DNA of 64,000 nucleotides. Origin: Andalucia godoyi And28. Taxonomy: Eukaryota > Protista > Jakobida. Numbering within the stretch: position 1 is the first letter of the stretch; each line of letters begins with the position of its first letter. The notes under the pieces are model-generated. The model saw nothing but the letters and a program-made list of their open reading frames with translations, was not told the origin of the DNA and did no database searches. Shown here one piece after another: positions 51,847 through 63,371 of the stretch. The stretch is taken from positions 252,446 through 316,445 of the forward strand of contig VRVR01000026.1 of the NCBI GenBank assembly GCA_009859145.1, written 5' to 3'. The position numbers were made by a program, and so were the translations under genes.

Positions 51847-52827
51847 CTACTCCTTCTTGACGGATGGGAGTTTCTTGGAGGTGGTGTAGGTCTTTTTGAA
51901 GAAGTCGGTAAATAAGTACAGGAAGGAAGCATTGCATGAAAGAGTAAAGATGAGTGCGAGAAGTCCTGTGCAGTCACCGTTTCGCAGTTGATAGTAATAT
52001 GCGTAGATAAACGTGAGGAAGAAGCTCGTTGCAAACTGCACGAGCTGCATGCTTGTGAGATACCGTTTCCAGAATGGCTGGAACATCTGAAGTTCGTATT
52101 CCAGCAAATCGGTCCTTCCACTCGAGTTTGCAAATGTGCGGGGGCGCGGGGAAGCAGAAGACGAGCCGTCGTGCAGCAACGCAATGTGGGTTTCGGACAC
52201 CCACGCAATCTCCGATCTGCGGATGACCCTGCGGCCCAGCGAGCATCGTGCGTAATAATAGTACATCACGACATGGATGCCGACGTTGAACAGAAGCCCA
52301 TAAGCATGGAAGACCATGTGCGCATCCAGCCAGCTATAGACCATCGCAATGACGATCGCATGGTGGTACACGTGGAGGAAAATCAGCTTCTTCTTCTTGA
52401 GAACCATGATGACTGTGTCAATTAGTTCGTAAAATTTCGACAAGTAGTACACATAGGCCCAGTACTGCAACCGTGCAGTCTGCCGAGGCGGTTCGGAAAA
52501 CGAGCGGCAGAAGAGCCTTTCCATTCTCGACGAGTAGCCGCTGCTGCGGATGCCGTTCTCGTCAGCCACGTACAGATTATACATTTCGAATAGAGTGCCA
52601 ACCATCATAATTGCCGACCAGACGCAAAGTATCATGTTGTGCAGTCCGGAAAACCACTGCAGCTGGAACGGACGCACAGAGCACGTTTTCATGACGAGCT
52701 GCAGCGCAAACACCGTGAACAGGTACACAGCAATCGCAATCGGGACTGTCTGCACAGAAGCAAGAGGCGTCGAGCCAGGGCTCCACACAAACGCATCCGC
52801 ATCACGCAGAACCGATACAATATCCAT
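51847..52827 (-). CDS. Very-long-chain fatty acid elongase (ELO/GNS1/SUR4 family)
   Basis: YYLSKFYELIDT, FLHVYHH, NVGIHVVMYYYY, WKRYLTSMQLVQF, NASFLYLFTDFF. ATG at 52827. Confidence 0.95.
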   Translation of the reverse strand: MDIVSVLRDADAFVWSPGSTPLASVQTVPIAIAVYLFTVFALQLVMKTCSVRPFQLQWFSGLHNMILCVWSAIMMVGTLFEMYNLYVADENGIRSSGYSSRMERLFCRSFSEPPRQTARLQYWAYVYYLSKFYELIDTVIMVLKKKKLIFLHVYHHAIVIAMVYSWLDAHMVFHAYGLLFNVGIHVVMYYYYARCSLGRRVIRRSEIAWVSETHIALLHDGSSSASPRPRTFANSSGRTDLLEYELQMFQPFWKRYLTSMQLVQFATSFFLTFIYAYYYQLRNGDCTGLLALIFTLSCNASFLYLFTDFFKKTYTTSKKLPSVKKE

Positions 52828-53264
52828 AGCCCGTGCAACCGACGAAGATGCGTCCTTGGCAAACGAGTATGATCCTATTTCAAAACGCAGTCGGCCTGCT
52901 TGTTCGCGCACTCTTCTCGATAGAATTCGCCCTTTTCTCTCTCAAGAAAATAATAATCATTACATAAAATAGTATGCATAATAAAAAAAAATTAAAATAA
53001 AAACGAGTTGACCGCAATTTCCCTTGTTCTCGCACTGCTGCACAGCTTCTCTTTTCCCTCAGTCGCAGACGTTTCCAAAGTGCCACACTTTGTTGGCGCA
53101 AGACAGCTGCTGTAAACAAATTCGGCATGCTCCCGCCCCATCTTTCTTGCCCAGTTGCACGCGATGCACGATATACACCAACGCATGGACTGGGGACTGT
53201 GCTGCCGTTCTCGGGTTCTTCGCTTCGTGTGCTTCCTTGCAAATCGTGTTTAGGGGGAAATCAG

Positions 53265-59782: not shown

Positions 59783-60169
59783 GCTAAATCAGGAATTCAC
59801 TTACGCCAGAAGTCCAGATAAACCCACACCAAGTTTTCAAACGAGAGCAGAGAGACAGACTGTGCAACACGAAGAGGAAAAAGAAGGAAGAGCTGGTTCT
59901 CTGTTTGTTTCTTTTTTTTTTTTTTGTTTTTGGGAAGGAAAAGGAAAAACGGAGGCCTAAAAATTAATTAAAAAAACAAAAACAAAAATAAAATACCTGA
60001 ACGAGAGGAATCGAAAGAACACGCGAGAGTCGAGAACGATTTCAGTTTTCCAGTGCGTACTTGACTGTGCGAGCAGACGAATCGTGCGTATTCCCCCGAG
60101 CGGGTGATTTGTTGGCGCATTTCATCCACCCGTCCAAACAATCCCCGCTGGCCTCCGAATCCTTTTTTA

Positions 60170-62518
60170 CAACCAACCGCAGTGATGTGAGATGATTTCT
60201 TTTTTGGTTAGAACGCCGTCTATTTTGGAATGAACTGCAGCAGCTGCAGCAGCTGTACTTTTGAATAAATCCAGGGCCCACCATGGGGCCCACATCCCCG
60301 CCCACGCGAATGAACGCAATCGAAAAGTGTTTTTTATTTTGCTGTTTTCTTGCAGATTTATTCGAAGGTGCCACATAGGATCAAGGCTTCGTAAAGAGAG
60401 GAATGAGACAAATTTCATCCATGTCAGTTCTTGCTGGTTCTCCTTCATTCCGCTCAACAGTTCCTGTTTCGACTTCGTTTTCTCGGAGTCCTGGATGAAG
60501 ATCAATGCCCCAGTCTTTGTACTTCTGCATCACGATTTCGGCTTTTTCATCCCCTTCGTGAATCCCGTCCAGAATTTGACGAGTATTCACCGGAATTTTT
60601 GTCAGGCACTGCACGAAGAACGAACGTGCATGCTTGTACGCGGCACCAATGTGTTCGGCAGGGATCTGGGTCGCAGCTTGCTGAACCAGTGCTGCAACCG
60701 CAGCTACGTTTGTCGCAGCTTTCTCTCGGACAATCTGGCAGAATTGAAACTTCCACATTCCAAATACCTCCTCGCAAGGATCCAAAAACGGAGAATATGG
60801 TGGCAACCGTTCCACTTCAATTTTGGATTCCCACTCGCGCAACAATGGTATCACTGTTTGCTTCGCCATATGCATTGGAACATTGTCGTGAATGATCATT
60901 TGCTTTTCACCTTCGAGAAGCTTTCCCGTTTGTTCGAGACGCCGGAAGAGATTCTTCAAAAATAGGGCATATGTGGCTCCATTGATGCCTCCTGTGTAGC
61001 ATTCGTAATAGACGAGCGAACTTCTGTCGACAGCTGCGATCACAGTCAGGCTCGGCACATGGATGTCGTGGATTGCAAGCAGTGGGCGGCATCCTTGAAG
61101 GGATATTCCTTGTTCGGGATGAACATCAAAATTGAACGGCGTCTCGTCGATGAAAATTGCCTTTTGATACTGTTCTTCTTTGTCGCCAAGCATTTTTGCA
61201 GCATACTCACTTCGAGCTTGAATGACACGCTCCAGATTTCGAGAGACTGGAACCGTCAGGAAGTCTGCTAGTCGAAAGCCAAGGTTGTTATGTAAGTATT
61301 TTTGCAGATTCTGAGCCAAATGGTCTTTGTTCACGACCTGCAACTCCGGAAACTGGATCACCAGCTTGTCTGCCAGATCTCGATAATGAAGATTGTTGTC
61401 GAAGACCATCTTTCGCGCAGCCCATAGAAGGTGATCTTCCGACAAGATTCTCTGCCGTCGGCTTGAGGGGTTCTGCCCTCCTCTCGACGGCATTCCTACA
61501 GGATCCAGTCCGTGCAATTGTCGCTGACGCATTCTGTTCCAAGTGGTCCGGACAGTGTTGATGTTTTTCTCCAAAATCCTTGCTACGTCGCTTGCACGAC
61601 TTCCCATGAAGTTGATCTGGTTCCAAATGATCTTCCGATCCTCCTGGGATACAACTCCAGTAGGCTTTATCGGTATTCGCGCCAGTTCTGCCTTTTCCTT
61701 TTCCAATGCTTCCTTTTGCTGGTGCTCTGCAAGTGCTGCCTTTGCCAACGTCTCTCGCACTGCCGCTTGCATCGTTAGCGTGCGAGCTGCGTCGATGCTT
61801 TGAGCCTTTCGTGTTCGTTTCATTTCCCGAAGCTCCTTTGAAGTGTCCAGTGACATTCGCCTTTTCGATTTCAACTGATTCATGTTGAGGTTTTGCATTT
61901 CCGGAATTGATGCCAAGTCTATGTCCGGAATTGGAATCACCTTCTCAGTATTCGGTAAGATCCGCTTCGCAATTTGATTTGGAACACTCGCATTTGATGA
62001 GGCCGATGCCACAGCCTGTGTGGCTCTTCGTTTCAATGAAGGCACGCGAACAAAATTGTCATGGATCTCATTCAATGGTTGTCGGACTGGGAGTGTCTCG
62101 GGAGCTGTCCTTTCTCGGAGGATTTCTTCTTCCGCCGCCGCAAACGGACCACGGCATGCATTCCTCCACGCTGTAGTCAAAAATATGGAATCATTATTCG
62201 AAGGAGCTATTTCCTGTCCTGCAATGTTCGTGGACGGCCCTGCTGCGGCCCCGCTGTCGTTTTCTCTCAGTGATGTAGGGTCCTGGCTTTCCATTTCCAA
62301 GTTTTCCGTGCGCTTTATAAGTAGGCGTGTTTTAAGATTGCTTGCAGTTTATCTGGAGATGGTTTTTTTATTTCGTAAACCATTTCAGTACACAGAAATC
62401 CTTCGTCCAAACGGCGTGCGCGCCAACTTTATTTTCGCCAACCGTAGCGGCAGTTCATTCCAAAATAGACGGCGTTCTAACCAAAAAAGAAATCATCTCA
62501 CATCACTGCGGTTGGTTG
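60170..62518 (-). mobile_element. Intact IS630/Tc1/mariner DNA transposon, 2349 bp, 69-bp perfect TIRs, TA target-site duplication
   Basis: 60170-60238 (CAACCAACCGCAGTGATGTGAGATG...GAATGAACTGC) is the exact reverse complement of 62450-62518. TA at 60168-69 and 62519-20. Encloses a DDE transposase ORF. Confidence 0.96.
60381..62294 (-). CDS. DDE transposase (IS630/Tc1-like, DD37E), 637 aa
   Basis: HTH-like SRASDVARILEKNINTVRTTW; catalytic IFIDETPF, IIHDNVPMH, LPPYSPFLDPCEEVF with 37 residues between the second D and E. First ATG at 62294. Confidence 0.95.
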   Translation of the reverse strand: MESQDPTSLRENDSGAAAGPSTNIAGQEIAPSNNDSIFLTTAWRNACRGPFAAAEEEILRERTAPETLPVRQPLNEIHDNFVRVPSLKRRATQAVASASSNASVPNQIAKRILPNTEKVIPIPDIDLASIPEMQNLNMNQLKSKRRMSLDTSKELREMKRTRKAQSIDAARTLTMQAAVRETLAKAALAEHQQKEALEKEKAELARIPIKPTGVVSQEDRKIIWNQINFMGSRASDVARILEKNINTVRTTWNRMRQRQLHGLDPVGMPSRGGQNPSSRRQRILSEDHLLWAARKMVFDNNLHYRDLADKLVIQFPELQVVNKDHLAQNLQKYLHNNLGFRLADFLTVPVSRNLERVIQARSEYAAKMLGDKEEQYQKAIFIDETPFNFDVHPEQGISLQGCRPLLAIHDIHVPSLTVIAAVDRSSLVYYECYTGGINGATYALFLKNLFRRLEQTGKLLEGEKQMIIHDNVPMHMAKQTVIPLLREWESKIEVERLPPYSPFLDPCEEVFGMWKFQFCQIVREKAATNVAAVAALVQQAATQIPAEHIGAAYKHARSFFVQCLTKIPVNTRQILDGIHEGDEKAEIVMQKYKDWGIDLHPGLRENEVETGTVERNEGEPARTDMDEICLIPLFTKP

Positions 62519-62783
62519 TATCTAGCCAAAGATGGGCAGCTGCAGCAGTCGTAGTTGCAGCTCCTTTTGACGTCACAAATCTCCGAAAGACCCACCCCTC
62601 CCAGAAAAAACCCTCAAAGACTTTCGACAAGCACCACCCCAACGTTTCAACAGGACCTCTCCGATAAATCCAGATTCAGCCACACCCAACACCAAACCGA
62701 TAGAAGACATTTCCAGTGATGCAGTAGACACTGGTGAGCACCAGCCAAGGAATATCAACGAACAGACAACTGCGCGAGCGACC

Positions 62784-63246
62784 ATGATGCGATTTTCGAG
62801 GCGATTGAAACGAGATCGAGAGCATGATGATGTCATGCTTGACAGCTATTATGCGCCGAAGCGATACTTGTCGGAATCAATGGCGGATTTGTTGCAGTCT
62901 CTTTCGGTATCTCCGTCGATAGTGCCACTGACCGCGACCACGATTGAGCCGCCTTCGAGGATGGTGCTGACGGGCGAGACCGGCGACGAAGACACAAGCA
63001 GACAGTCGATGCAGCAGAATGGAAAGGACGAGTGTGGAAAACTGGAGCTTCTGAATGGCACTGCTTGTACTGCGCTCGTGCCTTACGTCTCGCAAACCCC
63101 CGTTTTGCGCTTGACGCCGCATGAGTTGTACTCGGAGACAGTCCTGGACAGAATCGCGAAAAAGAATGCACAGCGCATGCTTCTTAATCTCGATGAACAC
63201 ATGAATAGGGAAACTAAGATGAAAACAATGACTGGACGTGATGATG

Positions 63247-63277
<31 letters not shown>

Positions 63278-63371
63278 GCCGGTACTGGCGGATGCAATGG
63301 CTGTCGATGCAGAGATGCTCGATGAATCTTTTGTAGAACGCACGTCATCATTCAGCATGGACATCGATTAA
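62784..63371 (+). CDS. Hypothetical acidic protein (195 aa from ATG 62784); the frame stays open upstream to a TGA at 62568-70
   Basis: ATG-initiated ORF with a basic N-terminus (RRLKRDRE...PKRYLSESMADLLQSLS) and a poly-Asp C-terminus. Confidence 0.65.

Follow-up and report, generated by a model that had tools for sequence, protein, structure and literature searches.

A probably autonomous IS630/Tc1/mariner transposon with an extended DD37E transposase from the jakobid Andalucia godoyi

A stretch of 64,000 nucleotides from contig VRVR01000026.1 of Andalucia godoyi (positions 252,446 to 316,445 of the contig, assembly GCA_009859145.1), hereafter called the window, carries a DNA transposon at 60170-62518. 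The element is 2,349 bp long and consists of one transposase gene between two terminal inverted repeats (TIRs), as is expected of the IS630/Tc1/mariner (ITm) superfamily. The left TIR (60170..60238, plus strand), with the terminus CAACCAACCG, is located on the 3' side of the transposase gene, and the right TIR (62450..62518, minus strand) on its 5' side. A repeat search and exact base comparison show that the two ends are perfectly complementary over 69 nt, after which one mismatch and two matches follow (72 nt at 98.6%). A TA dinucleotide abuts each TIR on its outer side, at 60168..60169 and at 62519..62520, and represents the duplicated target site. A 30-nt terminal probe matches only these two ends in the window, where the chance expectation is 0. 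The allele without the element is predicted to read ...CCGAATCCTTTTT-TA-TCTAGCCAAAG.... On the left, the element ends 387 bp from the ATG of a pyruvate carboxylase gene (59782, minus strand). This neighbour is a 1,181-aa open reading frame (ORF) with Pfam biotin carboxylase, PYC_OADA and biotinyl domains, and it has the same orientation as the transposase gene. On the right, an ORF on the plus strand starts 264 bp past the element, so that the insertion site is a divergent intergenic region.

The transposase gene (60381..62294, minus strand) encodes 637 aa plus a stop codon, is uninterrupted from its ATG and is the sole long ORF of the element. Its product matches a single Pfam domain, DDE_3, at residues 382-518 (E = 4.5e-15). 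Together with alignments to Sleeping Beauty and SETMAR, both of which are also recovered by phmmer with the window transposase, this match places a catalytic domain of RNase H fold at residues 380-566 (60597..61157, minus strand). The catalytic triad, as positioned by the Sleeping Beauty and family alignments, is formed by D383 in AIFIDET (codon 61146-61148), D470 in IIHDNVPMH (60885-60887) and E508 within PPYSPFLDPCEE (60771-60773), all on the minus strand. The triad members are separated by 86 and 37 residues, so the element is of the DD37E type, a spacing found in the ITm superfamily. The first-pass annotation of this DNA, made from the letters alone, had reported perfect 69-bp TIRs with a TA duplication, an uninterrupted 637-aa ORF, D-D-37-E spacing with a variant motif around the glutamate and a position in a divergent promoter region about 390 bp upstream of pyruvate carboxylase. 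Base comparison, alignment and the Pfam assignment of the neighbour bear out each of these points.

The NCBIfam IS630 profile (NF033545) aligns to the transposase almost end to end, over residues 231-538, with 69.1 bits against a cutoff of 100 bits. An AlphaFold2 (AF2) model was computed from an alignment of 24 sequences and replaced a model from 4 sequences. The mean predicted local distance difference test score (pLDDT) is 69 (55 for the earlier model) and is about 90 in the DDE domain. A Foldseek comparison of this model gave a match to full-length Mos1 across about 375 columns (E = 2.6e-12). Target template modelling (TM) scores of 0.73-0.78 were reached against the Sleeping Beauty, Mos1 and SETMAR catalytic domains. 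Two three-helix units are predicted ahead of the catalytic domain, at residues 217-260 and 286-337 (61284..61646, minus strand), with a basic GGQNPSSRRQR linker. Their helices have a pLDDT of about 80-90, the Mos1 alignments extend over them, and their arrangement is paired-like, as in the ITm superfamily. The clade relatives described below match Pfam HTH_32, HTH_23 and HTH_SB. Judged from the model and from these relatives, the region would be the bipartite helix-turn-helix (HTH) DNA-binding region of an ITm transposase. Residues ~216-570 thus form a standard IS630/Tc1/mariner transposase core.

Other copies are found in A. godoyi. The window protein is present in the EukProt proteome of this organism, and a second 637-aa protein, ANDGO_05503, differs from it by S3N only. 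A paralog of 639 aa on scaffold VRVR01000048.1 (L001:6001-7920) shares 76% of its residues and 79.6% of its nucleotides with the window copy. The element that carries it is likewise complete, with 70-nt TIRs at 93% identity and the ends TA|CAACTGACCG...CGGTCAGTTG|TA (TA|CAAC...GTTG|TA). In NCBI and UniRef the paralog is named 'mitochondrial rve superfamily member'. It is a transposon ORF bounded by TIRs and its acidic N-terminus is unlike a presequence, and the assignment to the mitochondrion is probably erroneous. Three further gene models, ANDGO_06714, ANDGO_02494 and ANDGO_05806 (P0012, P0154 and P0013), two of 255 aa and one of 191 aa, are internally deleted. They have one common junction, ...SEVA|DFLTVPVS..., at which about 105 codons over the HTH region are lost, and they belong to a third subfamily. 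These models look like copies of a single non-autonomous, internally deleted derivative. Taken together, the window copy, ANDGO_05503, the paralog and the deleted models show that intact ORFs are present in at least two subfamilies of this genome, next to non-autonomous derivatives. Of the subfamilies, that of the window copy looks the youngest.

The transposase is unusual in what precedes the core. The first HTH starts at about residue 217, and about 215 aa are located upstream of it (residues 1-215; 61650..62294, minus strand). In the AF2 model residues 1-103 are mostly disordered, a box follows at about 105-136, in which the segment 111-120 has a pLDDT of ~90, and residues 144-200 form a single long basic helix. 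When searched alone against Pfam and PDB sequences, the extension has no match. A coiled coil was considered for the 144-200 helix and rejected, the occupancy of heptad a and d positions being no better than in shuffles. At the start of this helix a bipartite motif is found (61806..61871, minus strand), in which KSKRR (142-146) and KRTRK (159-163) are separated by a 12-aa spacer. An alignment of the four closest homologues shows no variation at S143, R146, K159, R160, R162 and K163. Given its fit to the classical bipartite consensus, the pair may act as a nuclear-localisation signal (NLS).

Translation could instead begin further in, at M135, M139, M147 or M158, with the ~135-215 codons upstream as an open but untranslated leader. 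The predicted disorder of residues 1-103, which match no domain, and the presence of several in-frame methionine codons just before the basic helix would agree with this. The comparison with the 76% paralog does not. The ratio of nonsynonymous to synonymous substitution rates (dN/dS) is 0.135 for residues 1-85, 0.21 for 86-136 and 0.19 for 137-210, next to 0.15 for the HTH region and 0.13 for the DDE domain, at an overall dS of 0.91. A leader would drift towards 1, and at a dS of about 1 or more it would gather stops and frameshifts. Values of 0.13-0.21 in every segment mean that the extension is translated and held under purifying selection. Furthermore, the boxes SLKRR..QAVA (residues 86-96) and R-[IV]-x-P...PEL (~111-133) and the basic helix behind them are conserved in environmental homologues at 44-51% identity. 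The box and the helix can still be recognised in more distant members, with both seen in P0006, P0009, P0010, P0016 and P0140. The confident modelling of residues 111-120 also argues against a leader, and we regard an internal start as quite improbable. By these substitution and conservation patterns, the N-terminal extension is real coding sequence, functional and under selection. This agrees with the first-pass annotation, which had placed about 220 aa before the first HTH-like segment, had listed the KSKRR and KRTRK clusters and had suggested that the extension may carry an extra function. In the prediction, the 'charged helices' seen there become a single long basic helix without heptad periodicity. 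Structure prediction over residues 1-220, proposed at the same time as a check, gave the disordered segment, the box and the helix described here, and no known domain was matched.

At the other end of the protein, the C-terminal tail is acidic and carries the motif ILDGIHEGDE (residues 574-583; 60546..60575, minus strand). Searched alone against Pfam and PDB sequences, the tail gives no match. The motif is kept in the alignment of a clade of about 24 proteins to which the transposase belongs, with H579, G581 and D582 nearly invariant, and the catalytic residues D383, D470 and E508 are nearly invariant across the 24 members too. This clade was delimited by an exhaustive hidden Markov model (HMM) search of 1.84 billion representative proteins; word-indexed searches gave just the 4-6 closest relatives, even with profiles. 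The HMM search returned 24 proteins at E < 1e-30, followed by many proteins of ~335 aa at about 1e-25. Most of the clade members are environmental sequences. By motif scan and alignment they are characterised by PPYSPFL[DN]PxEE, a D36-39E spacing and a C-terminal ILDGxHEGDE, and many of them have a long K/R/E-rich region ahead of the HTH. Of the 152 proteins scanned, about 30 have the ILDGxHEGDE motif, and none of these is a short DD34E relative. A neighbour-joining (NJ) distance tree was built from the DDE domain alone, so that the C-terminal motif was excluded, and all 21 sequences with the HEGDE motif fall inside one clade of 24.

Other members of the clade are found on contigs bounded by long TIRs. 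The element L083:604-4040 (JGI 3300043542) encodes the 638-aa clade member P0009 between 135-nt TIRs at 99% identity, and its TA duplication is situated inside a palindromic GGATATCC target (GGA-TA-TCC). A TA duplication is thus seen in the window element, the paralog and L083. The left TIR of L083 is separated from the ORF by about 1.1 kb of non-coding DNA. In P0020, a 636-aa metagenome protein from ENA that belongs to the more distant clade members, the K/R/E-rich region is preceded at the very N-terminus by a SAP domain (PF02037, E = 8e-7), which suggests an exchange of N-terminal modules among clade members.

The clade is apparently restricted to eukaryotes. Its signature motif has no credible relatives in 185,579 prokaryotic species genomes (GTDB), and the short relatives give two hits only in the same genomes, both at contig ends of metagenome-assembled genomes. 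A scan of IMG/VR found no relatives. The near-absence from the prokaryotic genomes and from IMG/VR suggests a eukaryotic lineage. An origin by transfer from bacteria was rejected, as the host is a eukaryote and the clade signature occurs in no prokaryotic genome searched. In a metagenome scan no relative exceeded 34% identity. Three short DD34E relatives (L006, L008 and L015) are found within ~25 kb of the 76-kb metagenomic contig JADMIO010809284.1, which points to a eukaryotic genome rich in the short DD34E family.

These short elements are the nearest outside the clade. They are eukaryotic IS630-like DD34E elements of ~330-360 aa, mostly metagenomic (for example P0036, P0041 and P0049), and they score 75-100 bits at 25-30% identity. 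Both groups have PPYSPFL.P.E, the linker [FL]R..DF..[VI]P..RN and a spacing of ~82-88 from the first to the second Asp, and both are essentially absent from prokaryotic genomes. The short elements, with the motif PPYSPFLNPIE, pass the IS630 cutoff at 150-168 bits. They differ from the clade in the DD34E spacing, in having about half the length and in lacking both the N-terminal extension and ILDGxHEGDE. Bacterial IS630 elements (NF033545) resemble the window element in the TA target, the bipartite HTH with DDE_3 and a DDxE spacing in the mid-30s. However, they are without the extra N- and C-terminal modules and without the NLS-like motif, and the window protein scores below the cutoff of their profile and has a eukaryotic host. 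Mos1, Sleeping Beauty and SETMAR/Hsmar1 have the overall fold, the TA duplication and the cut-and-paste logic of the window element, but the identity to the window protein is only 16-21%, and their transposases are 340-360 aa long with DD34E/D and a SPDLNPIE or SPDLAPSD motif. Tc1 (DD34E) and mariner (DD34D) proper were rejected as assignments on the spacing of 37 and the motif SPFLDPCE. In the window protein Pfam Transposase_1 (mariner) has no match even at E <= 1, and HTH_Tnp_Tc3_2 has none either. Long transposases are known in the ITm superfamily from the pogo/Tigger group, which has DDE_1, a DDxD triad and a CENP-B-type N-terminal HTH. Membership in this group was rejected too: neither DDE_1 nor CENP-B_N is matched and the third catalytic residue is Glu.

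The 37-residue spacing would suggest that the element comes from TRT, Mosquito (MS) or L18, the DD37E families of Tc1/mariner that have been named, and has gained extra sequence. These families agree with it in the D-to-E spacing, in the TA duplication and in having one ORF without introns between the TIRs, and TRT has been reported in protists (PMC10379824). Their transposases are ~336-340 aa, up to 370 aa in MS, and the three groups are mutually unrelated (PMC10379824). TRT was compared by sequence, with the 338-aa TrTRT transposase rebuilt from the supplement of PMC5630946, and MS and L18 by published description only. TrTRT and the window protein give 26 bits in phmmer and 48 bits in blastp, with 22% identity in the DDE domain, while the short IS630-like DD34E elements reach 75-100 bits. 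The spacing shared with TRT is therefore taken as convergent. The TRT motif is the Tc1-type WPPCSPDLNPIE (SPDLNPIE) and not PPYSPFLDPCEE, and at 637 aa the protein exceeds the ~338 aa of TRT; the ~340-aa ORF described for MS and L18, even with the upper limit of MS, does not fit it either. In addition, the spacing varies from 36 to 39 inside the HEGDE clade itself, and DDxE spacing is viewed as a weak classifier in the literature (PMC11544213). Descent from a named DD37E family is, on this evidence, extremely improbable. By sequence affinity the element is IS630-like rather than Tc1-like, and its DD37E spacing ties it neither to TRT nor, probably, to the other DD37E families.

The family is probably undescribed. 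Public entries for its copies bear no label other than 'hypothetical protein', 'transposase' or 'mitochondrial rve superfamily member'. Transposon-like sequences receive only a passing mention in the A. godoyi genome paper (PMC7050145), and the terms 'rve', 'transposase' and 'DDE' are absent from those of its supplements that were searched. A literature search found no paper that connects ITm/mariner transposases with jakobids, and the signature motifs of the clade are absent from the searchable supplements of the largest Tc1/mariner phylogeny. On classification, the first-pass annotation had proposed a Tc1/IS630-like, possibly undescribed ITm family. ITm membership is upheld and so is, probably, the lack of a description, while the Tc1-like affinity gives way to an IS630-like one. 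The transposase is as long as was said there, but its length is a feature of the clade and no peculiarity of this copy. Of the checks recommended there, a DDE-domain phylogeny was made as the NJ tree described above, and TRT is far more distant in sequence than the IS630-like group.

The intact ORF, the perfect 69-bp TIRs and the second copy only one residue apart indicate that the element is young and autonomous, as had been proposed from the letters, and it is probably still mobile. A different view would be that the locus is an immobile relic or a domesticated host gene derived from a transposase, with the extension as a module for a host function. Purifying selection over the whole ORF would be in line with this, as would the very small number of copies in a compact 20-Mb genome and the annotation of the paralog as a putative mitochondrial protein. 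Domestication, on the other hand, is usually followed by loss of the TIRs, and here these are perfect over 69 bp and accompanied by a TA duplication and an intact triad. The near-identical second copy and the deleted derivatives speak against it as well, and so does the paralog, which is itself flanked by TIRs and TA. The environmental relatives are found on TIR-bounded contigs, as expected of repeated mobile DNA, and the insertion is located in a promoter region and not in a conserved gene slot. We therefore hold a relic or domesticated gene to be very improbable.

Each TIR has a further internal structure. Two direct sub-repeats, TCTTTTTTGGTTAGAA and TCTATTTTGGAATGAA, are found 21 bp apart in the left TIR (60198..60234, plus strand) and are mirrored in the right one; they form a candidate transposase-binding pair. 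They agree at 12/16 positions at offset 21, which was equalled by 22 of 2000 shuffles. A direct repeat at the same offset is also seen in the TIRs of the elements L002 (1/2000 shuffles) and L003 (4/2000), so that it is significant in three of the four TIRs examined. This recurrence suggests that each TIR carries two adjacent transposase-binding sites, which would make four candidate sites per element. Two binding sites per end are known from the inverted repeat/direct repeat (IR/DR) elements Sleeping Beauty, Tc3 and Minos, where they are ~160-200 bp apart in TIRs of ~230 bp. Both types have two direct sub-repeats per end, but those of the window element are adjacent, with the 21-bp spacing, in a TIR of 69 bp. 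Directly after the TA, the terminal pattern C-N5-A-Y-C-G is common to four elements, namely the window element, the paralog and two environmental ones.

A mechanism can be proposed from these features. The transposase would enter the nucleus via the bipartite basic motif at residues 142-163, and its paired-like HTH region would bind the two 21-bp-spaced sub-repeats in each 69-bp TIR. By analogy with the family, the ends would be synapsed and the DDE site would excise the element. It would reintegrate at a TA, which is duplicated in the process; the duplication itself is seen. In the most speculative and least supported step, the box at ~105-136 would dock on the core, and box and basic helix together would most likely add DNA contacts or aid or regulate assembly of the synaptic complex.

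Taken as a whole, the element is very probably an intact, autonomous class II ITm transposon of the nuclear genome that inserted recently at a TA. Its extended transposase belongs to a rare, apparently eukaryote-only clade whose nearest relatives are the short IS630-like DD34E elements. Several points weigh against this interpretation or parts of it. Bootstrap values are modest in what is a distance tree only, with 37% for the HEGDE clade, 55% for a core of 11 and 92% for an inner group of 5. That the family is undescribed is not proven; the statement is drawn from public labels, the literature and phylogeny supplements, without Repbase or Dfam. The window transposase itself has no match to any Pfam HTH family. 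Residues 1-103 of the extension are mostly disordered in the model, and the long helix lacks heptad periodicity, which leaves a role in coiled-coil dimerisation unsupported. The sub-repeat in the TIR of the paralog, taken alone, is not significant in the shuffle test. The copy number amounts to two gene models from one proteome, and ANDGO_05503 may be an allele or an assembly duplicate. Mobility is read from the sequence, no transposition having been observed, and the second copy, the paralog and the deleted derivatives are indirect signs of it.

A more far-reaching interpretation is possible, which we put forward as tentative and rather doubtful. The ~24-protein HEGDE clade would be a distinct, unnamed, eukaryote-specific ITm family. 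Its N-terminal module, made up of the box modelled with high confidence, the bipartite NLS and the ~57-residue basic helix, would be a new accessory domain for transpososome assembly or target choice. This domain would work together with ILDGxHEGDE and the 21-bp-spaced sites, and the A. godoyi copies would still be transposing. If true, a compact transposon native to Discoba would be available in an intron-poor genome of 20 Mb and could be used as a genetic tool for jakobids.

Among DNA transposons, ITm elements are the most widespread. Genetic tools such as Sleeping Beauty, Mos1 and Himar1 come from them, and nearly all of them have transposases of ~340 aa. A transposase of double size with extra modules under selection is a natural experiment in the modulation of a minimal transposase by accessory regions, which could act on nuclear import, on DNA binding or on synapsis. 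To our knowledge, hardly any mobile elements have been described in jakobids, which are deep-branching eukaryotes, and genetic tools are lacking for them. The window element would be the first DNA transposon characterised in this group and a candidate for use as a vector in insertional mutagenesis. Its insertion in the same orientation 387 bp upstream could alter the expression of pyruvate carboxylase, a central metabolic gene. It is also one further case in which DDxE spacing guides family membership poorly.

The remaining features of the locus are minor. The plus-strand neighbour beyond the right end is a putative gene of 195 aa (62784-63371), in which a (TGA)13 repeat at 63239-63277 encodes a poly-Asp run; it has no Pfam match. 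Between pyruvate carboxylase and the transposon lies an imperfect inverted repeat (59904-59993), made up of a 28-nt poly-T run and (AAAAAC)3-4. The ORF at 51847-52911 (minus strand) belongs to the GNS1/SUR4 (ELO) fatty-acid elongase family (Pfam E = 2e-52) and is ordinary host context. Just inside the left TIR (60235-60260) a CTG/CAG-rich 21-mer, GCAGCTGCAGCAGCTGTACTT, is found, which is 86% like a 21-mer of host DNA at 62536-62556, 16 bp outside the right end. The paralog has AGCAGCTGTAC in its 3' subterminal region and CCAGCTGTACA in the neighbouring flank. This resemblance may be due to chance, a target preference or a subterminal motif.

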